A stretch of 63,581 bases of DNA, filler included, from Octopus bimaculoides (lineage: Eukaryota), in NCBI RefSeq assembly GCF_001194135.2. It is 6 parts of 6 records of this genome, joined end to end, with 100 filler letters (N's around TTAATTAATTAA, not from the genome) between each part and the next. Parts side by side here need not be neighbours in the genome. Positions count along the whole stretch, not along the records: positions 1 to 15,623 come from NC_068987.1; 5 more parts are not named here. One strand, given 5' to 3'. The position numbers were made by a program, and so were the translations under genes. Positions 1-15,623 of this stretch are shown piece after piece. Each line of letters begins with the position of its first letter. Position 1 is the first letter of the stretch. The notes beneath the pieces are model-generated. The model had not been told where the DNA came from and made no database searches. It saw only the letters and a program-made list of their open reading frames with translations.

Positions 1-190
1 TATATATATGTATATATATATATATATGTATATACATATATATAAAATTTCAAGAAGTTTATTATTTGTTTCTTTTGTTTTTCATTCTTTTTTTTTTTTG
101 TTTCAGATTTTTCTTTGAATGTCTCAGATAAAACTGTGAGAATATCAGAGAACCAAAAGCCTCAATATTTAACTTGTTCATCCACGGAAA

Positions 191-1375
191 ATGGAAGTTG
201 AGATGGAAGCTGAGATGGAAGCTGAGATGGAACCTGAGATGGAACCTGAGATGGAACCTCTTTCTGATGAGAACCTGTTTCAGTGCGATATATGTAAGAA
301 GGAGTTTCTACATAAGAGTGATCTTGGAGTTCATCTAGTTACACACACCAACAAGAAACGTTTCCATTGCCCAATTTGTGAGAAAGATTTTGCTGATCCT
401 TCAAAGTCCGTACGACACATGAGAACACACACTGGAGAGAAGCCATACCATTGTGGTGTATGTGGTCGAGCTTTTGGCTATAGAAATGTCTTAAAAAATC
501 ACTTAAAAACTCATACTGGTGAGAAACCTTTCCTATGTACAATATGTAATAGATCTTTTGCAAGGAAGGCTCATTTGACAGGCCACTTGAAAGTACACAA
601 TAATAAAAATTCACATCTACCAATAAGGATAACAGCACCTTATTCAGAAAATTGGATAGGGAAAGATATAGTCACAAAAGTATTTAATGAGGGAAGAACA
701 CAGCCACATGCAGATGATGGTAAAGACAAAGAGTCTGGTAACGATGGAAATGGAGGGAAAAAATCTGATAATGATGGAGCTGAAGAGAAAGAATCAAGTA
801 ATGATGGAGGTGAAGATGACAAAGACATTCCAGAGAATTCCAATAAGAATAAAGGGAAAAGAGTTCAGTGTCAAATTTGTGATAAATATTTCTCATTTAA
901 ATGTGATTTGAAAATCCATTATCGAACTCACACTGGAGAGAAACCATTCCAGTGTGATGTGTGTGGTAAACATTTTGCACGAGGTGGTGATTTGCAAATT
1001 CATTTCCGAATACACACTGGTGAAAAACCTTTTAATTGTGAAAAGTGTGGGAAAACCTTCAGTGATAGGTCTTCTTTCAATAACCACAGGAGGAGACACA
1101 GTGGGGAGAAACCGTTCCATTGTCAAGTGTGCCGACAGAATTTTGCCGATAGGTCCACTCTAAAAAGACACATCAGAAGCCATACTGGAGAGAAGCCTTT
1201 CCATTGTGAGATTTGTGGCAAAAATTATAGCCGTAACGCTATCCTTAGTGTTCATCTAATGACTCATACTGGAGAGAAACCGTTTTGCTGTGATAAATGT
1301 GGGAAAAATTATTCACAGAAATGTACTTTAGTCGCTCATTTAAAATCTCACACTGAAGAAAGTGTCCCTGGATAG
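191..1375 (+). CDS. C2H2 (Kruppel-type) zinc-finger protein, 394 aa, 10 fingers in 4+6 arrangement
   Basis: Ten C-x2-C-x12-H-x3-H motifs, mostly with TGEKP/SGEKP linkers; acidic/Asn-rich spacer between fingers 4 and 5. In-frame stops upstream (TGA 116-118, TGA 137-139, TAA 170-172) make ATG 191 the start. Pyrimidine tract plus TTTCAG acceptor ending at 106 implies an upstream 5'UTR intron. Confidence 0.95.
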
Positions 1376-1382
1376 AAAATGA

Positions 1383-1388
1383 AATAAA
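1383..1388 (+). terminator. Putative polyadenylation signal of the zinc-finger gene
   Basis: AATAAA 7 nt after the TAG stop, followed by a GT/T-rich element (TGTTGTTTTATTT, ~1401-1413). Confidence 0.5.
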
Positions 1389-2245
1389 ATTACCAAGAAA
1401 TGTTGTTTTATTTAATGTGTTAAAAGCAAGCTTAGTCTAAGAGCCATTTCACTTCTCGGTTGAAGCTAAAGACGATGCTATAAATTGTTCTAAAAACTAT
1501 ATGGCTTATATGCCTAATCAAAGCAAACCAATATTTCATTTAATGATTTTTTTTTCTTTTCTATATATATAAAAAAAGACCTGACTGTAATTTTATTTAA
1601 TTATCTTTCTCTTTGGCTCACTGTGTCTGTTTTTGTATTTTTTCTATATTTCCTCTTTTTTTTTTCCTCTGATATCAGCATTGTGAAATAAAACAGCAGA
1701 TGGAATTAGCAGGTTAGGTTTCAGTCTATGGTTTAGTATTATTAAGGCAGTTGGATTTGTATATAATATAACTGAATCTTATTGTTATTGTATTCTTCTT
1801 GGGGTGCCCATGGCCAGTTCTTCAGCAGAACTAAGCCAGAGAGGTAGCTGACAGATAATACATACAAACCCATACAAAGCATTCGATTAATATTTCTTAT
1901 ATACTATCAGAGTCATCCTTATTTTTATTTTGGATCATGATCTGTTAAGATTTAGGATTTAGAACGTGCAATTTCTATTTTGATGATGAAGAATTTAAGA
2001 GACCTACTTAACATTTAACAGAAACAAGCATACTTGTTCAGGTATATTGAGTCCTTGTGCTGTCTTTATCAGTTACTGAAATGGAATTACAACATAAATG
2101 CTTATTCCGCTTCAAGATTAAAAAATTGATTTAGGTTCAGTGTCTGGTTTAAAATAGCTTCTTTACAAACTTTTGCTACTATTTCAAATTTCAAACTTCT
2201 TAAAAGATGCCCATTTTTTAAGCATTTCCAATTTTTTTCTTTGGA

Positions 2246-2620
2246 AGCATGTGGCATAGTGGTTAGGGTGTTTGGCTCATGATCATAAGGTGGTAGGTTT
2301 GATTCTTGGACTACTTATTGTGTTGCGTCCTTATCTCTTTAGCATTCAGATTATTCTGTCAAATGTGATGCTTGTTTATTCATATTGTTTTCAAGTAATC
2401 CTGAATTATCTTGTAGCTTTGAGATTTTGATAATGTGATTTTTATTTTTAGAATGAAATTGTAGGTCAGTTATGAGAAATCAGACCCTGACCAGTTTGAG
2501 CATAAAGTGGGTAGAATATTTGGGCTGGATATGGCCTGTTTGAATGTTAAAGGGTTAAGCAAAAGACACTATATTTCATGTTGCTCCAGTCTAATGAGCT
2601 GAGAATGAGTACCGGCTGAT
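2246..2620 (+). mobile_element. tRNA-derived SINE (family C), split by a MITE at 2331-2558
   Basis: A-box-like TGGCATAGTGG and B-box-like GGTTTGATTCT; sequence appears to resume after the insert (GCAAAAGACACTATATTTCATGTTGCTCCAGTC). Confidence 0.6.
2331..2558. mobile_element. piggyBac-like MITE including TTAA target sites
   Basis: Left TTATCTCTTTAGCATTCA (2331-2348) is an imperfect inverted repeat of right TGAATGTTAAAGGGTTAA (2541-2558); TTAA|CCC...GGG|TTAA is the piggyBac signature (left end decayed). Confidence 0.7.
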
Positions 2621-5130
2621 TTTTGGTACAACACTTTGTCCCCATCCTGCTGTCACATTCTTGATGTTTCACTAGGTCAGAGGAACAGGAAGGTGTTTTT
2701 ACTTGCAACTCCATTGGCACTAAACAACCAGTGAAAGCTTGGTTCTAGTCACCATGTCATATTCATTTGCAAGCAACAGCTAAGCTTTTCTATTGTTTTA
2801 CATTCCATGAAATGGATAGGATGACTTTTGCACATTTTAAGGTTTCATTGCAAAGTGCTTATTGTACAGTTAACAAAATACTCAACTGTGTAAAAAAAAA
2901 AAAAAAAAAACACCTTTCACAGGAACCACAGCATGTTAGCTATTGCAAGGTTTGAACTTTAGATTATGGGGCTAGTTTTGACTTCAAGACTTTTTTCAAA
3001 TGAGAAGAGAAAACTATATATACAATGAGTTAGACATGGCTAAAAGATAAAGGAGAATGAGTTTTATATTATAAATGTATTTCCATTTATGGTATTTAAG
3101 AGCTAAATTATTAAGACATTGTTAAACTCCAATACATTATTACAATGCAATACACACTGCTGGAATATNNNNNNNNNNNNNNNNNNNNNNNNNNNNNNNN
3201 NNNNNNNNNNNNNNNNNNNNNNNNNNNNNNNNNNNNNNNNNNNNNNNNNNNNNNNNNNNNNNNNNNNNNNNNNNNNNNNNNNNNNNNNNNNNNNNNNNNN
3301 NNNNNNNNNNNNNNNNNNNNNNNNNNNNNNNNNNNNNNNNNNNNNNNNNNNNNNNNNNNNNNNNNNNNNNNNNNNNNNNNNNNNNNNNNNNNNNNNNNNN
3401 NNNNNNNNNNNNNNNNNNNNNNNNNNNNNNNNNNNNNNNNNNNNNNNNNNNNNNNNNNNNNNNNNNNNNNNNNNNNNNNNNNNNNNNNNNNNNNNNNNNN
3501 NNNNNNNNNNNNNNNNNNNNNNNNNNNNNNNNNNNNNNNNNNNNNNNNNNNNNNNNNNNNNNNNNNNNNNNNNNNNNNNNNNNNNNNNNNNNNNNNNNNN
3601 NNNNNNNNNNNNNNNNNNNNNNNNNNNNNNNNNNNNNNNNNNNNNNNNNNNNNNNNNNNNNNNNNNNNNNNNNNNNNNNNNNNNNNNNNNNNNNNNNNNN
3701 NNNNNNNNNNNNNNNNNNNNNNNNNNNNNNNNNNNNNNNNNNNNNNNNNNNNNNNNNNNNNNNNNNNNNNNNNNNNNNNNNNNNNNNNNNNNNNNNNNNN
3801 NNNNNNNNNNNNNNNNNNNNNNNNNNNNNNNNNNNNNNNNNNNNNNNNNNNNNNNNNNNNNNNNNNNNNNNNNCATGGAATATATTCAATGCTGAATTTT
3901 TATTCTGGTTTGCACACGTGTACCTAAAACAATCCAGAAGGATTCCCGCTTCTTTAATGAAGATATATACAGATAAACTTCATTCCCTTTGCTTTGTCGG
4001 ATACGTAGAGTGTTCGTTTTGGTGAGGTGAGAATTTTGTTTATTTATATATATTTTTTTGAACTATACTATACTGATGAACGGAAACTAGATTTCATTCT
4101 AGTAATCGCAAAATCAGTCGATACATAGTTGAGTTATTTAAAAGAAAGTTGGTTTCTTCTGTTGGTTACTTTCCTCGCATTCGGTACTAAAATGTGTTTA
4201 TTTGGGAAGTCGAGTGTGTGGCATTATTCTGTAGTAATGCCCTTATATAAATATATATATCAGTCTAACAAAGGGAGATAATTCTCCACAAGTGTTTGTA
4301 TCCACATTCATTCATTTATCTTTGGTTTGGTACTCAGTTATTGAAGAGGAGAAAAAATGTCAATCACTTCAAAATGAATATAATTATGAGTTTTGATATC
4401 AAAATTAAAATTTTTTTTTAATCCTTGCAAAGGATTTCAGTACTATTACAGGTAAATATTCCCTTAAATCTGGAACCTGTTCTTGATTGGTAAGTTGAAT
4501 TCCAGCATCTACGACACAAAATACCTGCAGTGAATGAGAACTTAGCTATTTACAGATTTTAACATATTTCTTACACACACACACACAAGCACACATTTAT
4601 ATGGTTACACCACCGATTTTCCAGTTCCAAGACCTTGATTGATTTACTGTTTTTCTGAACCATCTGTGGTCACCTAATAATAATTCATCAACACACATCT
4701 AACCTATTAATTATATGCTTCCCATGTGTCTAAACTACCATGAACATCTAGAAACTTAAATTTAACAAATACATATTATTAAATATATATTTAATAAATG
4801 AAATACAAGTAGTTGTGCATTACCTTGCTACATTTATTAATTACTGTACATATAAAAAAATACTCCCAAGATGGCAAGTATTAGAATTTTAATGGCTCTA
4901 ATCTATCTTACAAATCCAGTCCATGGCTTTGGCACTGTTGAAACCATTCCATTATCACTTGATCATGAGCAGTACTCTTACCGTCGTTCATAGTTTCTCT
5001 AGTTTTCATTTGCTTTCTATGAATCATTGTTTACATAATACATCAATGTTTTGTCTCTTTGTTTCTTGATATTTTTAAACAGCAGATGAAATCAGTGCCA
5101 TAGATATCACACAGCTTATGTACTGGAATA

Positions 5131-5560
<430 letters not shown>

Positions 5561-5904
5561 TGGTTCATATTTTCCAGCAGTTCTGCTTATCTTGGATCAA
5601 TGTGAATTGATGTTTATGTTTGACATTACCACCCAAGCAGCCATTGCTAAGAGTAACTTTAAGCTAAATAAGCAGAGGAGCTCTCAAAATTTTGGTATTG
5701 CCACTCACAAGTGCAGTATTGCATGTAAGTAAACACATGGTACACATATCACCACCTGTTGTCATGCAGTGAACTAAGATGGTAGGCATGTGGATTTCAA
5801 CCTCCATCTTATAAGTAATCTTAATTAAAGGTGGTGGCAGACCATCACTTGCTGGAAAATTGATGGTGTACTTAGATGTGTGTATGCATGCATGTGTATG
5901 TCTG

Positions 5905-6231
5905 TTGTCCATGCTGGCATGGGTTAGACAGTTTGACCAGGGCTGGTAAGCTGGAAGGCTGCACCGGACTCCAGTCTCATTTTGCATGGATTTTACAGCT
6001 GGATGTTTTTCCTAATGCCAACCACTCCAAGAGTGTAATGGGTGATTTTATGTGCCACCAGCATGGGTGCCATTTGCCTGACACTGGTATCTGCCTTAAC
6101 TGCGATTTTACTTGGCTTGATGGATCTTCTCCTCAAGCACGTCATAATACCAGAGGTCTTGGTCATTGCCTCCGTGAGGCCCAACACTCAAAAGGTGCTT
6201 TTCACGTGCCACCGGCATCAGCCACCTTGCC
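5905..6231 (-). mobile_element. SINE-like repeat family E; + strand fragment at ~9985-10050
   Basis: Internal repeat GGTGGCAC(G/A)T(G/A)AAA(A/T)(G/T)CACC; GTGGTTGGCATTA shared with 10035-10047; 3' end CCCATGCCAGCATGG resembles tail 2. Confidence 0.6.
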
Positions 6232-6278
<47 letters not shown>

Positions 6279-6280
6279 AT

Positions 6281-7590
6281 AATCATTGTCATCATTTTCC
6301 ATCTGTCACTTTTTCTGTATTTGCATGGTTCTAGATTAGTCTTTTCCATTTTTCCAGCTTACCATCTTGTTACTTGTAATCTTTTGTCAGAGCCTAGGTG
6401 AGATTTAATTTTTGAGATCAGCCTTCCCTACTTCTTCCCATATCTTCCTTGGTCTTCCTTTCCAGCAGGTTCTTTACACATGTCTCTTGCCTCTTCTTCG
6501 CTCAACTGCTATCCACCATGTGTCCACCATGTTCATATCGATAGTCTTCTCCTTTTACATGCTCCACCTGATTCTTATATTCAGTTTTCCTCCCGTCTCA
6601 ATTGTACTCTGTTGTTCATTTACACCAGAGGTTGGCAAACTTATAATCACTGATCCTTTCATGGAATTGTTAACTTATCAACCCCATCATGTAAATTTCT
6701 AAAGTAAAATTAAAAAGTATAATTAATAAAAAAATTTTTGATTTTAAAAACAGTAATTCCTTTGTTCTTTTGTGTCATTACCACTTTTTCTTAAGAACTA
6801 TTTAAAGAAATTTAGTGAAAATACTTAATGAAATTGATAAGAACAATAAAAATTCAGTCATTATATTGCTATAGTCAGAATATTTAATATGAAATACGTT
6901 TGGGGAATACTAGATATTGTATTAATATTTGGCTGGAAATTAGAATAAATTCAAAATTGTTGGACAACTGAAACCATCATTGTCAGCATTTAATGTCCAT
7001 GTTCCATACTGACATAGAGTCACTCTTATAAATGAGCAATAAATGCAAATTACTATTGCATTCTTTTTATGATGTCTTCATGAAAATTATGCACTTATTC
7101 TTAACAGGCCTGCCAATTAGCTAGTTGGCATTGCTATGTTTACTAGGTGTATGCCAATGACATACCTGCTAAGGCATTTTGAATTTCCATAATATATTTG
7201 AGATATTATATTTCCATATTATATTTGAATCTTATTCAGGTTGAAAAAATAGTTTGCTAATAATTGAGTGCTCTTAATCCTCAGAATCACTTCAAAAGTT
7301 TATCAACCCCTTGGAGAACTACATAGACCTTCAGGGATCAATATTGATCACTTTGCCGACCCCTGATGTACACTAACATTATACATCTAGTGGACTGCAT
7401 TTGCCTCCCTTCTTTCCAGCCCTCACATCTTTTGTATTTTATGTCCATGTTTCACCACAATCCTGTATCATACATTGTACACGAGCAACCTACAACCTGC
7501 CCTTTGCTTGCAAAGGGAATCCATTCGTTGCTAGCAGAGTCAATAGCTCTTTCAACTTTTTCCAGTATGTGTTCTACTTCACTGAATGTT
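6281..7590 (-). mobile_element. Degenerate RTE-clade LINE 3' fragment, interrupted by a hAT MITE
   Basis: 7590-7375 translates WKKLKELLTLLATNGFPLQAKGRL*VARVQCMIQDCGETW; 6617-6410 gives KLNIR...GRPRKIWEEVGKADLK (with frameshifts), typical post-RT RTE ORF2; 3' end at 6340-6281 finishes in ATGATGAC. Confidence 0.75.
6626..7365. mobile_element. hAT-type non-autonomous element
   Basis: TIRs CAGAGGTTGGCAAAC / CTTTGCCGACCCCTG; 8-bp TSD ATTTACAC (6618-6625) versus ATGTACAC (7366-7373), 7/8 match; host RTE sequence continues across it. Confidence 0.75.
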
Positions 7591-7611
7591 TTGTCATATA
7601 GATGCAGGCAA

Positions 7612-7957
7612 CGGTATGGTACTTTGGGTAAGTGTTTTCTGCTGTAGCCTCAGGCTGACCAGAGCTGTGGATGTGGTTGACACAAGCTGAAAGAAGCGTA
7701 TTGTATGTGCCTATGGTTGTGTGTACCCTTGTTTTGCCATGACATGAAGGTTGTTAATGAGCTTCATCATACAAGCGGCGTTATTTGTTTCCTGTCTTCT
7801 ATGAAAAACATGTCTGACAATGAGGAAATATTACCTTGTTTGGAAACAGATGAGCATTAGCAGCAGGAAAGGCATCCAGCCATAGAAAATCTGCCTCATT
7901 GAATTTCGTCTGAGCCATACAAGCATGGATAAGTGGACATGAGAATGATGATGATGA
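7612..7957 (+). mobile_element. SINE family A, partial head plus tail 2
   Basis: Head segment GGTACTTTGGGTAAGTGTTTTCTGCTGTAGCC...CTGAAAGAAGC, then GGAAAGGCATCCAGCCATAG and CATACAAGCATGGATAAGTGGAC-(ATG)n. Confidence 0.8.
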
Positions 7958-8504
7958 CGATGACACTGCTTTGTGATCCACAGTATGACTGTGATGAGTG
8001 TGACTGATCCAATCATCACCTCTTACTTTCAGCATCTCTCCTTGTTAATTAAACCTGATTTCTAGCTTCTCTCCTCGTTATACCTGATATTGTGCCTTGT
8101 TGCCTGTTTTTTTTTTGTTTTTTTATCTAGGCCTGTCTTTTAACTTTGGGTTACCCTACCATATCATTCCACCACCTTGTTACCTTTCAGCTGTTTGGAG
8201 CCTTGTTCTATCCACAGATTTTGCCTTTGGTTTGCAGTAGGTGATGTAAAAACTAACTGTTGTCCTTATTGTAAGTCTCTCTTCCCATTATATACATTAC
8301 CTAATACTTCTTTGAACCTATGTATGACTGAGGGATCTTGCAGCTTCTATATTTTCCTTCTTGGTGTCATGTCTCTGAATCCATCAAGCTCTTATCCTCT
8401 GATTACATTCTTCATAGGGGAACGACTGACAATTCAGAACCAGTTGTCTGTCCTACTATCTAGTGAGAATAAAATCTACATGGGCCAACTAAAGAATTTA
8501 AGTG

Positions 8505-8730
8505 GATGTGTGTAGGTTTGTGTCTTCATGTCTTGACACGGTGTAATTCTTGTAAATGAACGCTATTCATTTTCAATATTCTGCAAAAACATGTCTAGCC
8601 ATGGAGAAATACTACGTTGCTTGGAAGCAGGTAAGGGTTTGTGACATAAAAGGCATCTAACTTTAGAAAATCTGTCTCAGTAAACTCCGTTTGATTCATA
8701 GAAAATTGGACATTAAAACAATAATGATGA
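8505..8730 (+). mobile_element. SINE tail-2 fragment
   Basis: Aligns by eye to 7730-7950 and 10590-10820. Confidence 0.7.
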
Positions 8731-9365
8731 AACAAGCTATTTTTTAGATGTTGGCTTCTAACCAAATTCTCACCAGTTCACAAAGAGAACAAGCAGCAGG
8801 CCATCAGTTTAATAACATATAATATGCATCTTAGGTTTGTCTCGTAAACAATAATGAAAAATGAACAACAGGACTGATTAAATACACTTTATTTACTTTT
8901 TTTTATCGTTGATTTTGAAATACATGTTTTCAAATACATACATGTGTGTGTGTGCGTGCGTGCGTGCGTGCGTACATGGGTGTGTGTGTATTTGTGTTTG
9001 TTTCTTACTCTCCATTCACCTGCATATATCTGCACAAATTAAAAAAAAAAAAAAAAATTTCCTCTCCAGTATTTTCCTAGTCACTTGTTTAAAGAATTGT
9101 TTCAATTTTTGCACCCACTTCATTCCGATAATAGAATTAATAATAACAATAACAACAATAATAATAATAATGTGGATACAGAAGCCTTTAGTGATAGGTG
9201 ATGCTGAAATGTGTTAGGCTGTGGGATTTTAATGTACACAAGTCATTAATCCACCTAATAAACTATCAACATAAGTAGCAAACAGATGTATGCATGTTGT
9301 ATGGACGTTGTACTGTGTGTTTTTGTATGTATGCACATGTTTTTTTTAGATATTTTTTCAAAACT

Positions 9366-9371
9366 TTTATT
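9366..9371 (-). terminator. Putative polyadenylation signal of the peptide gene
   Basis: AATAAA on the minus strand ~220 nt after the TAA stop at 9594. Confidence 0.55.
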
Positions 9372-9593
9372 GTTAATATCTTAATTTTCTAATTGTTTAT
9401 AAACGTCCTTTTCTTAATATGTCAAAGCATAACTTTCAGCATCACTTTTCAAAACACTTTCAACGCTGGTGTTCATCATCCCATCACACAAAAAAGAGCA
9501 TCACTGTCTCCTATTTCAGTTATCATCCCTTTCTTTTCTACATCTTGTACGAACTCTCTTCCTTTTTCCAATCTCTGCTTTCTTTCAAATATT

Positions 9594-9750
9594 TTATTTG
9601 CGTTTCTCATTGACAGCAATGTTACATTTATGGTAAGTTTCGAAGGTTTTGTCTGTGAGACAACGATAAGTATAGCTACTACCATAGAATTCACCACAGG
9701 CTTCACAGGTTCCAGCATATGAATAAAGAGTCGCCCCTTTCGGAATTGAT
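9594..9750 (-). CDS. Terminal coding exon of a secreted 4-Cys prepropeptide
   Basis: Acceptor TTTATTCGTTGCAG| at 9751. First nt completes AG|A (Arg), then SIPKGATLYSYAGTCEACGEFYGSSYTYRCLTDKTFETYHKCNIAVNEKRK*. Phase matches the exon at 11705-11806. Confidence 0.85.
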
Positions 9751-10190
9751 CTGCAACGAATAAATGCACATTTAATCTTGAGTCACACAATGGAATCTTG
9801 ACCTACTAAAAGCTGAATTACCTGCCCCTGAATTAACATGCAAATGACTGGGCATTCCATAGACGCGTACCCATAACATAATTCTCAGACCTAATGCGTT
9901 AACCTTTCATCTAGCTAAAGTCACATCCCTCTGTTTTGTAGCCCCTCTCAGTCGAAGGGAATTTTAGTTTTCCAAACTGCATGGCGACATTACTGGTACC
10001 ACATAAAAAAAAGCACCCACTATACTTTATGAAGTGGTTGGCATTATGTAAAACTATGTAGTGGACATACGAACGTAGCAGGATTATCTGTTTCTCAATA
10101 GATTGGAAGAAATTCTTATTAGGATCTCATCAGAGGTTTTTATATCATTTGACCAATCTCAGAGAAACGCAGCCAATCTGTTTATATATA

Positions 10191-10342
10191 GAGCTGTGTG
10201 GTAATAAGCTTGCTTCCCAACCACATGGTTCTGGGTTCAGTCCCACTGTGTGGCACCTTGGGCAAGTGTCTTCTACTATAGCCTCTGGCTGACCAAAGTT
10301 TTCTGAGTGGATTTGGTAGACGGAAACTGAAAGAAGCTCGTC

Positions 10343-10384
<42 letters not shown>

Positions 10385-10563
10385 CTTTGTGTCTGTTTGT
10401 TCCCCCACCATCGCTTGACAACCAGTGTTGGTGTGTTTACGTCCCCGTAACTTAGCGGTTCGACTTAACACACCAATAGAATAAGCACTAGGCTTACAAA
10501 GAATAAGTCCAGGGATCGATTTGTTCAACTAAAAGGCGGTGCTCCAGCATCGCCGCAGTTTAA
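10191..10563 (+). mobile_element. SINE family A, near full length, tail 1 (in peptide-gene intron)
   Basis: tRNA-like head (GCTGTGTGGTAA...GGGTTCAGTCCC), (TA)n(TG)n hinge, tail ending GGCGGTGCTCCAGCATCGCCGCAG. Confidence 0.9.
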
Positions 10564-10574
10564 TGGGCGAGAGC

Positions 10575-10820
10575 TGCTTTTATGTGTACCTTTTATGTGT
10601 ACCTTTGTCTTGACATTATGTGATGGTTACAAACGAGCAAGCGATATTCGTGTTCGTTTCCTGCCTTCCGTGAAAACCATACCTGGTTACAGGGAAATAT
10701 TACTTTGGAAACAGTGAAGGTTTGGGCGACAGGAAGGCATCCGGCCATAGATAACTTGCCTTAGTAAATTCCGTCTGACCCATGCAAGCATGGAAAAGTG
10801 AACGTTAAACAATGATGATG
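10575..10820 (+). mobile_element. SINE tail-2 module directly after the tail-1 copy
   Basis: GACAGGAAGGCATCCGGCCATAG...CCCATGCAAGCATGGAAAAGTGAACGTTAAACAATGATGATG. Confidence 0.85.
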
Positions 10821-11244
10821 AAAATGTTGGACCTTGTAGCAAATTAAACCGTTCTGTTACAAAATCAACAGTACAAACGTCCAGGTTTCTCTTTAAAATA
10901 TCTAGCCTATCCTATATTCTATATATACTATTATATACTATGTTATTTTCTTTAACTGCTAAGTGTGAGTGGTAAGCTACAGTGCATAGAGATAGGCCTT
11001 GATTCCAGTCAGTTTGGATTCTTGAATTTCACTGTTGTTGCGAGAGGCAGAGCTACTTACGTCTCTTTCAAATTCGAGCACCCAAGATTATGTCACCTGT
11101 TTCAAACCATATTTTCTTAATCTAAAGAAATTTATCAGTAGCTGATTCAAAAAACTATCGAGAATATAGGTTAAATATTTTATCGAACCTATTTGTCTTA
11201 CAGTTTGGTCCTGCTTCACTGTTCCGTGGACCAAAACGAAGGTG

Positions 11245-11640
11245 TTGCACAGTCGCTTGATCTGCTGTGAATAGCACCCAAAATCTCCCTTAAATCACCC
11301 TTATCATAAGAAAGAAAGGATAAGGTAGTCATAGATACATATATTATAATGAAAATAAATAAAAACGATGGGATAGCTACATCTGGAACATTTGATCATA
11401 GATTTTTCACTCTTCCGCGAACCAAATTGAAGTAGTTGAACCGCAGTCGCTCGGTCTGCTAGAAGTAGCAGCCAAATCTTTAAATCACTTTCGAAAAAGT
11501 AAAAGCCACATTGAATAAGGTAGTAATATATATATATATATATAATAGAAAAATAAACAATGGACTGGTCACAACTGGAACACCGTTAAAGTTTGGTCAT
11601 AGTTCTATTGGATAGGAGCAAACCTGGAGGTGAACTACAA
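11245..11640 (+). mobile_element. Two tandem copies of dispersed repeat family F (SINE-like, AAC tail)
   Basis: CAGTCGCT(T/C)G(A/G)TCTGCT...ATAGCA...AAATC at ~11248 and ~11444; TTTG(A/G)TCATAG motif shared with the other family F copies. Confidence 0.65.
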
Positions 11641-11704
11641 CTTCAGTGTTGTGTTTTTGCGGATGAATAACATGAAATGTTAAAATGTGAGCAAAATGTC
11701 TTAC

Positions 11705-11799
11705 CTTCTGATCTCCTCCAGAGTCATGCTGCTTCCGTAACTGCACATCAAGGTACAAATTAAAGCAATAATAGCCACGCGTGGTAAACTCATCATCAT
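11705..11799 (-). CDS. First coding exon of the same prepropeptide (signal peptide plus pro-segment); exon spans 11806-11705
   Basis: Poly-T tract plus TAAATAG| acceptor at 11807; ACA-ATG at 11799; MMMSLPRVAIIALICTLMCSYGSSMTLEEIR + AG|GTAAGA donor at 11704; hydrophobic h-region and small residues at the predicted cleavage site. Confidence 0.85.
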
Positions 11800-11813
11800 T
11801 GTTAACCTATTTA

Positions 11814-11848
<35 letters not shown>

Positions 11849-11983
11849 ATGAAAAAGGACCCCACTGAAATAGTATTTTTGCTGTAAAGTATAATGCTGA
11901 TAGAACAAGCAAAGTTATTTGAAGCTATTTTTGTAGAAAGCTGTCATTTCAAATCCATTACATTGTAACACGATTTTTGTCTT

Positions 11984-12327
11984 TGGGTAGCAACTATTAT
12001 TTGCTATTTGCTTACCACTAGAAAATACGAAACATGGCTTATATTTCCTTCAAACTTTGCTTTTATTACATTTATTCAAACTTCAAAGAATCCCTCTCAA
12101 CACATGACTATGATGCTCCCCAACTACTCCTGCTCATGATCAGAGATGCCATGATCATAGTCAGCCACTAAGGGACGTGCTCAAGTGGTTAAGGTCAAAT
12201 AACTGACAAGCAAATCTATGGTATTGAGCAGAATATGTTATAACGATATTTCTGCTTTAGCAACTCAACGTTGAATTTGTGTGAATTGTAATGGAAAATA
12301 GGTCAGTTTCAAAACATTGCTGTCCAG
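11984..12327 (+). mobile_element. ~340-bp dispersed repeat, probable MITE (second copy 59920-60263, inverted)
   Basis: Collinear reverse-complement match between the copies (CTCTCAACACATG(A/G)CTATGATGCTCCCC, GTCAGCCACTAAGGGAC); weak terminal inverted repeats TGGGTAGCAAC / ATTGCTGTCCAG. Confidence 0.75.
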
Positions 12328-12446
12328 ATGTTCAAATCACAAAAGCAAAGTTTGAAGAGAATAGTAGTCATTTCCTTTGATTTCTAGAAAAAAAGTAGAT
12401 AGGAAATAACAGTGACAAAAAAAAAAAAAAAAGTTACACAGTATTA

Positions 12447-13174
12447 CAATTGACAATTCTTTATCGAAATTACTGGGACCCCAACGTGTTTCAGATCTCG
12501 GAATATTTTTTATATTTGCATCTATAAAACAGCACAGCTTGGGGGATGGGACCTATATCTAAATACAGCGTACATTTACATTTTATAATATAGCTTATAT
12601 ATATACTCTGAATGTAATTTTATATAAATTTTTAATGATTTTTTTATACATAACACCGTCAGAAAAGTAAAATGTCAGTCTCTACCAACGATGTCATGTT
12701 TTGATTAAAAGTTTACAATATACGTACGCCATTTGTATTTTATTTTATCACTATACAAATATTAGTTTTCATGTAAGGTATTGAATACATGTAAATGTAA
12801 TGAAGGCTGGAAACAAAGTCAGCATTTTATTTTTAAAGTAATGTACAAGTACTGATCTAGTCATGTTACACTCATACATGGAGGTGAAATTCAGACCTTA
12901 CGTAAAAACAACAACAAAAACCCGTTTTGTGGTTACTGTACAAAAAACGAAACAAGACATTGATCATTGCTTACTGACTTGAACATAAACGTAGACCCAG
13001 ATATTACAACTACGTCAGGTCCGAGAAACTTGAGGGAGAGGGTACATCATAAATGGCATCACTGCGCATTGGAAAATTCAGTAAGTTATCAGTATTCACG
13101 TACGAAGAATGCAACGATAGCGTGTCATGTTAGCATCCGGATTTTGGAATTTAGGATAAAAGATTTTCAATTTG
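12447..13174. mobile_element. Tc1/mariner-pogo (Tigger4/MER46-like) non-autonomous element
   Basis: TA|CAATTGACAATTCTTTATCGAAATT versus right end AATTTAGGATAAAAGATTTTCAATTTG (imperfect TIRs). Internal blocks CTGGGACC..GTGTTTCAGAT, TTGGGGGATGGGACC, GTAATTTTATA and GTCATGT..CGGATTTTGGA match my recollection of mammalian Tigger4/MER46. Confidence 0.6.
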
Positions 13175-14640
13175 GTTTATTATCATATGGTTTTACATTT
13201 ACTCAGTTCACTTAGCTGTTAGCTAATATTGGTTGATGATGAGTTGAATACAAAACGCAAACAACAAATGGAACTCTTTATCATACCAGTACCTTCAATA
13301 AAGATCATCTCAGATTTTTCTGAGATGTTTATAAGAAGTTTAAAACTTTGAGAGGTGTGAAGTAAATTATTTTTAGCGGTGGAGCTTGAAATAGATAAAG
13401 CAGTAGTTTGCAGAATATTGGGTTTAAAAATACCTTGGATGGGGTGGGAGAAACAAAATATTGAAAGATGCCCATGGAACATGAACTCGTATTTTCTATA
13501 AACATGACAGACGCTCGAGCCATTATGAAGTTTCTCCCTCCATTTTAGATGTTCTGCTCTTACTAAGGAGACTTGAAAGATCTTTCTTTATAAGAATTCT
13601 TGAAGAGATTTTCCTGTCTAAGGGGTTTTTTAAAACTCAATATTGTACGTGCTATCATTTATAGCATTAGCTACTTCGAGTCCCAGCGTTAAAATTAATT
13701 CACGTAAATCTTTTTAAGGTTTGACCTGACGTTTTATTTTAAGGTTTCTACGACCAACGACTGATGGATGGAAAGGAGGAGGAGAACTGATCTGAATTCT
13801 CGTAACAGTGAACTCTGCTAAAAGCTTTCATGCATCAAATGATACATGAGTTACCATTTTATATTTCAGTTGAAATACACTACCTTTGTTTTAATAAATT
13901 TTGAAAATGATGATGCATTTTAAAAACACTTTAGTCACTATTAGGCTGTGTTTGGAACAAATTAAAATGAAAAGTTGGATCACTTTAAAACAGGATATTT
14001 ATATAGAATCAAGGATCAGTCTCAGGTTGGTTGGTATCAAAAGAGTTAAGCCTGGCAAGGGATTAAGTCTACCATTGAAAACAGTAGCTTCTGCACACTT
14101 TCCGTTTACCAAATTTCAATCATAAGGTCCTGATCACCTGATGCTAAGGCAAGAAAATTTGCCCAAAGTTCCACAGCTGTGATGTAAAATGAGCTTGAAT
14201 CAAGTAATCAGATGAGAGATGAAACTGGGCCCAACAAACCATTAATATTTTACTATTTTTGAATATTTCATTTACGTTGTCCTAGAATACTTAGCTTCAA
14301 ATAGGTACTAGGAATGAACAGTTCTTTGAGTTCTTTACCTTTTTTAAGATGGTGTATCTTGAGGGATATTTCGCTGCCATTTCTAGTAAGTCAAGGCTTC
14401 TTTTTAGATGCCGAGAACCTTAGAATAGTTATTAACTCTCGAAGAAATCGGCTTGTGATTGATTTCAATGACGAATTGTTACCATTTTACTTCACTTTTA
14501 TTGCTAACGTCAGGGAACAAATAACACCGTTACTTTTATGAAGGTGATATTCATTTTTAGCTATTACGTGATGTCAAGACAAGAAGACACAAATGCGTAG
14601 ATCATGTATATACACACAGACATAATATGCACACGCACAC

Positions 14641-14754
14641 ACGACGGCCTTCTTTCAGTTTCCGTCTATCAAATCCTCTCACAATACTTTGGTCAGATCA
14701 GGGTTACAGTAGAAGACACTTGCTACTCAAGGTGCTACACACTGGGACTAAATC
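14641..14754 (-). mobile_element. SINE family A head fragment
   Basis: ACGACGGCCTTCTTTCAGTTTCCGTCTA...GTAGAAGACACTTGC. Confidence 0.8.
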
Positions 14755-14914
14755 TACGTTTTAACTACACAGTGATATCTGCACCTATACATAGATTATA
14801 TATATATATATATATATATAAATATATCACGGACTCACCCGTCGTTTGACGACGTATGAGGGTTCGACAATTTCGAACAAATCATCTGTGTGGGCTGCCG
14901 AACAGCCCACACAG

Positions 14915-15022
14915 ATGATTTGGAAAGAAGGTGTGTAGCGTGTGACCGTCGCAGAGAATCTGCATAAAATTTTGCCAAAAGCATGGTGATACTTGCTCAG
15001 AGTCCTGCGTAAAGTTTTAAAA
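14915..15022 (+). mobile_element. Inverted duplicate of the mariner 5' region
   Basis: 14922-14952 is the reverse complement of ~15436-15467; followed by ICIKFCQKHGDTCSE (mariner N-terminus) on +. Confidence 0.75.
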
Positions 15023-15623
15023 AACTTTTCATCGTTCTCGACACAATCAAGGAGATCTTGTGCAACTGAAACCCGAGTGTCTTTGGTCAGCTGAAAGTAA
15101 TTTTGGCACAAACTTGGCAGACACGCGTCTCATACCCAAACCTTCAGTAATAATGGACTGAACTGAACCGTAACTAATCTGCACATCCTCTGATAACTCA
15201 CGAATGGTAATTCGACGATTTTCCTTCACAGCTGCACGCACATCTGCGATGTTTTTCTCAGTTCTGCTGGTTGAGGGTCTGCCAGAACGTTCGTCAATAT
15301 CGACATTTTCGGCCATATTGGAAACGTCTGAACCACATGTACACTTGTGTGTGGTTCATACACTCCTCTTCATACACTTTTTGTAACTTTGCGTAGGCCT
15401 TTGAGCAGGCCATGACAACTTATGTCATGGTCAATGCGACGATCACACGTTACACACCTTCCTTCCAAGCACTGCTGTAATCAGCGGAAGTGAACTAGAA
15501 CGTTAAAATTTAGTGCGCATGCACAGCAGAGTTCAAGGTCAATCTATGCCAAACAGCTTCACTCTGCGTACTTTAGCTTCGTTACTATGACAACAGTACA
15601 GATACTTATTGCTCAAACTACGT
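15010..15623 (-). mobile_element. Mariner transposon 5' half (transposase pseudogene)
   Basis: AYAKLQKVYEE...WFRRF / DERSGRPSTSRTEKNIADVRAAVKENRRITIRELSEDVQISYGSVQSIITEGLGMRRVSAKFVPKLLS: mariner HTH region plus WVPHEL-like linker; frameshifted; TIR-like end abuts the gap at 15623. Confidence 0.9.

Follow-up and report, generated by a model that had tools for sequence, protein, structure and literature searches.

What do two short open frames on the minus strand of an Octopus bimaculoides locus encode when they are joined across their intron, and does the product belong to any hormone family that already has a name? The DNA analysed here (the window) is a stretch of 63,581 nucleotides from assembly GCF_001194135.2, made of six parts joined by filler letters, and the two frames lie in the first part (positions 1 to 15,623, from NC_068987.1). 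Our preferred reading, to which we assign a probability of about 0.62, is that they form a real gene of O. bimaculoides, split into two coding exons, which encodes an 83-residue precursor of a secreted signalling peptide and belongs to an orphan molluscan prohormone-like family. Conserved versions of the precursor occur in octopus, oysters, scallops, mussels, and snails. Peptide signalling in molluscs, and above all in cephalopods, has been the subject of repeated catalogues, yet the precursor is absent from the portions of these that were searched. This conservation, a fixed intron position, and the absence from those catalogues together make the peptide an orphan ligand candidate with a testable product. 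If it is a hormone, octopus physiology gains a further signalling system.

Translation of the minus strand places the coding exons at 11799-11705 and 9750-9594, and the spliced coding sequence of 252 nt gives 83 residues. The ATG at 11799-11797, in the context gttaacaATGATGATG, opens a 95-nt coding segment, which ends at the donor AG/GTAAGA (11705/11704; a slash marks the splice site). The intron, 11704-9751, closes with the pyrimidine-rich acceptor ttcgttgcAG at 9751 and splits the second Arg codon of an Arg-Arg pair as AG/A, which makes it a phase-2 intron. Exon 2 stops at a TAA (9596-9594), and an AATAAA at 9371-9366 lies 223 nt past the stop. The two-exon spliced gene is real. The original prediction had described the two exons with their canonical phase-2 GT-AG intron, the creation of the RR site by the exon junction itself, and the AATAAA; translation yielded the same 83 residues, and all three features were recovered. 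The part coordinates and the four Cys codons, all TGT, were re-verified. The features of the gene, all on the minus strand, are as follows.

11800-11846, minus strand: probable 3' splice acceptor before the coding exon, seen as a T32 polypyrimidine run and gtaaatAG (AG at 11808-11807).
11806-11800, minus strand: short 5' leader GTTAACA, following gtaaatAG in the sequence.
11728-11799, minus strand: predicted signal peptide MMMSLPRVAIIALICTLMCSYGSS, codons 1-24, from the translation, the leader features, and the leaders of homologues.
11705-11727, minus strand: propeptide MTLEEI, then one Arg and the opening two bases of the next Arg codon, at the end of coding exon 1.
9751-11704, minus strand: phase-2 GT-AG intron of 1954 nt, from its donor and acceptor and from the same position and phase in homologues.
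9606-9750, minus strand: last base of the Arg32 codon (9750) and the predicted mature peptide, from the translation.
9749-9606, minus strand: predicted mature 48-residue peptide SIPKG...AVNE, from the translation.
9707-9705, 9698-9696, 9662-9660, and 9626-9624, minus strand: Cys codons, from the sequence.
9594-9605, minus strand: C-terminal KRK and the TAA stop, from the translation.
9350-9593, minus strand: 3' untranslated region with the AATAAA, from the sequence and the comparison with Octopus vulgaris.

The gene model itself is not new. The product matches A0A0L8HDQ3_OCTBM of UniProt ("Uncharacterized protein", Octopus bimaculoides) letter for letter, and the identical model stands in UniProt and ENA labelled as uncharacterized. 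The gene had been called hidden, which it is not, because public gene models with the exact splice already exist. The original prediction had also set conservation in other cephalopods as a test of the gene, and an O. vulgaris orthologue was found: CAI9726134.1 is 99% identical to the product and differs by E28D. The O. vulgaris locus (69 kb, L001) aligns collinearly with the entire window (about 85-90% identity). Within the coding sequence, 3 of 252 positions differ between the two species, two of them synonymous and one a Glu/Asp exchange. Coding exon 2 (157 nt, 9750-9594) carries no substitution; identity is 95.9% in the 3' untranslated region as far as the poly(A) signal and 87.6% in the intron. 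Neither the window nor the 69-kb O. vulgaris locus was found to hold a second copy of the peptide.

The O. vulgaris gene spans a range of 49 kb, and its 88-residue isoform (CAI9726133.1) has an extra MQRLT from exons far upstream. This isoform uses the acceptor AG/GTTAACAATG, which corresponds to T32-gtaaatAG/G at 11807/11806 in the window. As the isoform uses the equivalent acceptor, a distant 5' exon beyond the window is likely; it would probably be non-coding, and use of the acceptor in O. bimaculoides is presumed from the comparison. The ATG of the O. vulgaris isoform stands directly before GTCAGT, 47 kb upstream (L001 10001-10003; 56950-56964), so at least one tiny 5' coding exon is annotated in O. 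vulgaris. It may represent either a minor isoform or an artefact of annotation.

We then inspected the distribution of the peptide outside Octopus. A phmmer scan of 1.84 billion representative proteins, with a cut-off of E <= 1e-3, returned 12 matches, 11 of them non-Octopus clusters with E from 6.8e-13 to 1.2e-4; wherever the source organism could be identified, these 11 were molluscan. A profile search with the family gave E from 7e-24 to 3e-18. Word-indexed homology searches, run from the sequence alone and also from the profile, returned only the family members already known, none with a name or a Pfam domain, and every non-Octopus match is labelled "hypothetical" or "uncharacterized" or is unnamed. 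The bivalve members include Magallana gigas A0A8W8N405, Mizuhopecten yessoensis A0A210QWE0, Pinctada imbricata, and Potamilus streckersoni; further members come from Mytilus trossulus, M. galloprovincialis, the gastropod-side Elysia chlorotica A0A433STF5, and several Logan/ENA contigs. One Logan run with a member is a transcriptome of Hua, a gastropod of the Cerithioidea (PMC12222893). Judged by these sequence matches, the family spans cephalopods, bivalves, and gastropods.

The alignment of the family comprises 16 sequences. Eight residues are invariant in all 16, namely P35, C47, C50, G51, G55, C62, C74, and A77, and they compose the pattern P...C-x2-C-G-x3-G-x6-C-x11(12)-C-x2-A. The four invariant Cys are the only Cys of the mature domain. 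The consensus is VRR-N-x-P-x-G-x-T-x3-F-x-E-x-C-E-A-C-G-E-x-Y-G-x3-T-Y-x-C-L-T-D-K-x3-T-F-x2-C-x2-A-V-x2-K-R.

The intron is conserved as well. In octopus, scallop, Mytilus, and two Logan genomic contigs, the codon that precedes the N/S-x-P start of the mature peptide is interrupted by a phase-2 intron. Specifically, scallop exon 1 ends with AGA CG/gtgagt and its exon 2 starts with tttcAG/G AAC, the last Mytilus exon starts with ttgcAG/A AAT, and the two genomic contigs (L004 and L005) read ...ctttacAG/T AAC and ...ttgacAG/C AAT. Several bivalve "proteins" that start with ...FRN are read-throughs of this conserved acceptor. Homologues in other molluscs are transcribed: one Logan contig (L002), with an A-run at its end, carries an uninterrupted coding sequence from the signal peptide through the propeptide to VRR-NIP..., and the Hua transcript (L003) also has an uninterrupted coding sequence.

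Two gene models in the family are composite in appearance. Elysia chlorotica RUS72543.1 is a 224-residue model with the four-Cys domain at its C-terminus; a lengthy NANDENK repeat precedes the domain, and the N-terminus bears a segment, HYAGRHRLEPG, that looks like the beginning of the Hua peptide. This model may result from a merger of genes or from a partial duplication. Mytilus galloprovincialis VDI33287.1, a 296-residue 'Sushi domain-containing' model in the 90% cluster of the mussel four-Cys peptides, is probably a fused gene model.

The layout of the precursor recurs across classes. By eye, the octopus leader shows a charged n-region followed by a hydrophobic core, with small residues ahead of the cut, and the alignment places hydrophobic leaders at the same place in full-length homologues. 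The four full-length bivalve precursors (oyster, scallop, mussel, and freshwater mussel) keep RR and a short acidic propeptide ([LF]ExxV), and the motif [LF]-E-x-[LFY]-[VI]-R-R is kept in octopus, in these four, and in the L002 transcript. The proposed order of signal peptide, short propeptide, RR, and four-Cys peptide thus recurs in all four. At the other end, KR, KK, RK, RRR, or G-[RK]-K closes 15 of the 16 sequences, and the G-[RK]-K of two mussel-type sequences is an amidation-type signal. The mature octopus peptide of 48 residues is acidic by calculation (isoelectric point ~5.7, ~5.35 kDa).

With this layout, the precursor would enter the secretory pathway and lose its signal peptide, a furin/PC-type convertase would cut after the conserved RR, and a carboxypeptidase would trim the C-terminal KRK. 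The resulting acidic 48-residue peptide would be stabilised by two disulfides, which link the second and third helices to the helix with the CxxC, and it may act extracellularly as a signal, either a neuro/endocrine hormone or a pheromone-like factor.

AlphaFold2 on the family alignment gave a leader of low confidence and a well-defined mature part. On the alignment of propeptide plus mature peptide, the mean predicted local distance difference test (pLDDT) was 85.9 and the predicted template modelling score (pTM) 0.66. In the numbering of this model, residues 16-30 form a helix with both Cys of the CxxC, residues 32-40 one with the third Cys, and residues 45-58 one with the fourth. These three helices of the mature domain have pLDDT of 88-93; the mature domain is therefore helical in the model, as the original prediction expected. 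Because the CxxC sits mid-helix, cross-helix disulfides (1-3/2-4 or 1-4/2-3) are predicted from the model rather than 1-2/3-4.

Several points weigh against the secreted signalling peptide. No transcript contig with the exact octopus product turned up in Logan or in other contig look-ups, and the expression, the splicing, and the peptide are predicted from sequence in O. bimaculoides. Signal-peptide and convertase cleavage are likewise predictions, judged by sequence rules. Two gastropod members have no RR at the homologous place, so RR cleavage is not universal in the family. The conservation between the two Octopus species is supportive, not decisive: since the species are close and many 100-nt intron windows are also more than 90% identical, exon conservation weighs little by itself. 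Lastly, the oyster and scallop ganglion neuropeptide surveys, in the portions searched, do not contain the four-Cys family.

The likeliest alternative places the family within the eclosion hormone/CHH-ITP helical superfamily, as a divergent branch with four Cys that lost one disulfide and may use a receptor guanylyl cyclase for signalling, as eclosion hormone does. We regard it as doubtful. The family resembles eclosion hormone (PF04736) in being a putatively secreted molluscan peptide of ~50-60 residues with CxxC-x3-aromatic-G in its first long helix and Cys in later helices, and the all-helical predicted fold, with the CxxC in its first helix and a single Cys in each of the two later ones, agrees with such a kinship. 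Molluscan and insect eclosion hormones share CxxC-x3-[YF/W]-G in the same register (CLSCMEYYG, CQVCYDMYG, and CAQCKKMLG). Moreover, the eclosion hormone and ITP/CHH groups have been treated as possibly related in published work (PMC8398477).

We compared the family with three eclosion-hormone profiles, built from insect sequences, spiralian type A, and type B/pan-bilaterian sequences, the last two taken from a published ligand file (PMC6660194). The hhalign alignments keep CxxCxxx[YF]G in register each time and pair C47/C50 with eclosion-hormone Cys2/Cys3 in all three profiles. The probabilities, however, were only 1.4% (insect), 1.3% (type A), and 10.9% (type B), with P of 0.003-0.04 and the best P, 0.0028, over 40 columns of type B. 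When the type B and type A profiles were each replaced by 150 column-shuffled versions, the observed score was reached by 5 of 150 for type B and 17 of 150 for type A; the best score thus falls inside the shuffled range at the ~3% level. The profile-profile similarity to eclosion hormone is suggestive at best.

The details of the alignment also depart from eclosion hormone. The original prediction read C62 as eclosion-hormone Cys4 after loss of the 1-5 pair, but hhalign aligns C62 with Cys5, so that loss was not reproduced. The loops of the family are shorter, with a C3-C4 spacing 3-4 residues below that of eclosion-hormone Cys4-Cys6, and the family has four Cys against six or more conserved Cys in eclosion hormone; the published eclosion-hormone orthologues all have six (PMC6660194). 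The intron phase is 2 in the four-Cys family, whereas one lepidopteran eclosion-hormone gene carries a phase-1 intron located four residues inside the hormone and one aphid gene is intronless; hence the intron marker is not shared. The four-Cys family is also missing from the published set of eclosion-hormone ligands that was assembled with jackhmmer (PMC6660194).

None of the 16 members matched PF04736 (Eclosion) or PF01147 (Crust_neurohorm) at E <= 10; the Pfam noise across them (Mom, C1_2, and zinc ribbons) lay far below the cut-offs and was set aside. The family profile found no CHH/MIH chain among PDB sequences at E <= 10, with CxxC zinc-ribbon noise (ribosomal L32, E 0.5) in its place. 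Foldseek, which is weak on ~50-residue peptides, gave no PDB match at E <= 10 for either the full-length or the mature-domain model, so that solved CHH/MIH chains were matched neither by profile nor by structure.

The likeness to CHH/MIH/ITP (PF01147, type I) is one of order: signal peptide, short propeptide, dibasic site, helical Cys peptide, and a basic/amidation-type C-terminus, with an aromatic residue four positions after CxxC. This type-I precursor order is not specific to CHH, because it is common to many prohormones. CHH/MIH/ITP peptides have six Cys and ~72 residues and are ecdysozoan, whereas the four-Cys family is molluscan with 48 residues in the octopus peptide, and the Pfam, PDB-sequence, and Foldseek matches are lacking here too.

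The claimed relationship to CHH/ITP or eclosion hormone thus comes down to the Cys spacing and the CxxCxxx[YF]G motif, and neither the profile comparison nor the structure comparison that had been proposed as checks bore it out. Any relation to this group is at most distant, and it is unproven. That the peptide is simply the octopus eclosion-hormone orthologue was rejected: O. bimaculoides has two typical eclosion-hormone genes, Ocbimv22024629 and Ocbimv22037767 (PMC6660194), and the peptide is missing from that set. Oyster Cragi-EH was rejected as an identity as well, since it has six Cys and two ligands per precursor. The narrower proposal of a pan-molluscan eclosion-hormone paralogue minus one disulfide is unlikely. 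Were such a four-Cys paralogue true, it would be a third eclosion-hormone-type ligand in molluscs, with its own receptor (guanylyl cyclase or other), and the superfamily would reach further into Spiralia; true kinship with eclosion hormone in general would bear on the diversification of the moulting-hormone toolkit outside Ecdysozoa.

A second alternative, quite improbable in our view, is a secreted peptide that is not a hormone but an antimicrobial, reproductive/pheromonal, or salivary/venom-like product of non-neural tissue. Molluscan water-borne pheromones, such as Aplysia attractin, are small, disulfide-stabilised, and helical, and the octopus peptide is predicted to be so too. The family is also missing from the oyster and scallop ganglion neuropeptide catalogues and from the pan-molluscan catalogue supplements, within the portions searched, and its absence from ganglion surveys is compatible with non-neural expression. 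Against this stands the acidity of the peptide, unlike cationic antimicrobial peptides. Its sequence constancy over three molluscan classes, its single copy in the locus, and its conserved dibasic site and basic or G-basic ends are more typical of a conserved ligand than of venom or immune peptides, which evolve fast.

It is hardly credible that the gene represents two open frames paired by chance, or an artefact of annotation without product: the exact-product look-ups showed no O. bimaculoides transcript or peptide, but homologues from further molluscan classes reach E 7e-13, share eight invariant residues, and have their intron at the same place and in the same phase, their transcripts have been assembled, exon 2 is 100% conserved between two Octopus species, and the conserved intron together with the homologue transcripts excludes a chance pair.

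The preferred reading, a secreted signalling peptide of an orphan family, leaves the matter of its name. As the original prediction had suspected, the peptide belongs to no named molluscan family in any source or paper searched. Motifs, accessions, and run numbers of the four-Cys family were found nowhere in searchable paper text except the Hua data paper (PMC12222893), in a search that covered openly available text. The supplements of oyster, scallop, pan-mollusc, and moulting-pathway surveys contained no family motif, accession, or run number in the portions searched. The family, with neither a name nor a Pfam model nor a located paper, appears undescribed. Clionin was considered and rejected. 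It is likewise a small secreted Cys-rich molluscan peptide, present in cephalopods (Sepia) and oysters, but in the published alignment its motif (DACLxCxxCF...) and Cys pattern differ from those of the four-Cys family, and the two are separate families.

The surroundings of the gene contain a few other elements. On the plus strand, 191-1375 is an intact single-exon open reading frame of 394 residues with many C2H2 zinc fingers, which starts with a (MEAE/MEPE)n repeat and is syntenic with a 410-residue single-exon gene in the O. vulgaris locus (L001 66805-68037). The run of N at 3169-3873 is an assembly gap within the piece, and the open reading frames listed across it are therefore artefacts. 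An interspersed repeat resembling a short interspersed nuclear element has two copies in opposite orientation, at ~5132-5571 and ~10193-10565, with arms that are 77-83% complementary. Each copy adjoins a (CA)n or (TA)n microsatellite, the one at ~10193-10565 lies inside the intron of the peptide gene, and more than 10 copies occur in the 69-kb O. vulgaris locus. A 126-nt direct repeat has three dispersed copies (7804-7929, 8585-8710, and 10669-10794) with 60-72% identity to the reference copy, and the third of them is also within the intron of the peptide gene.

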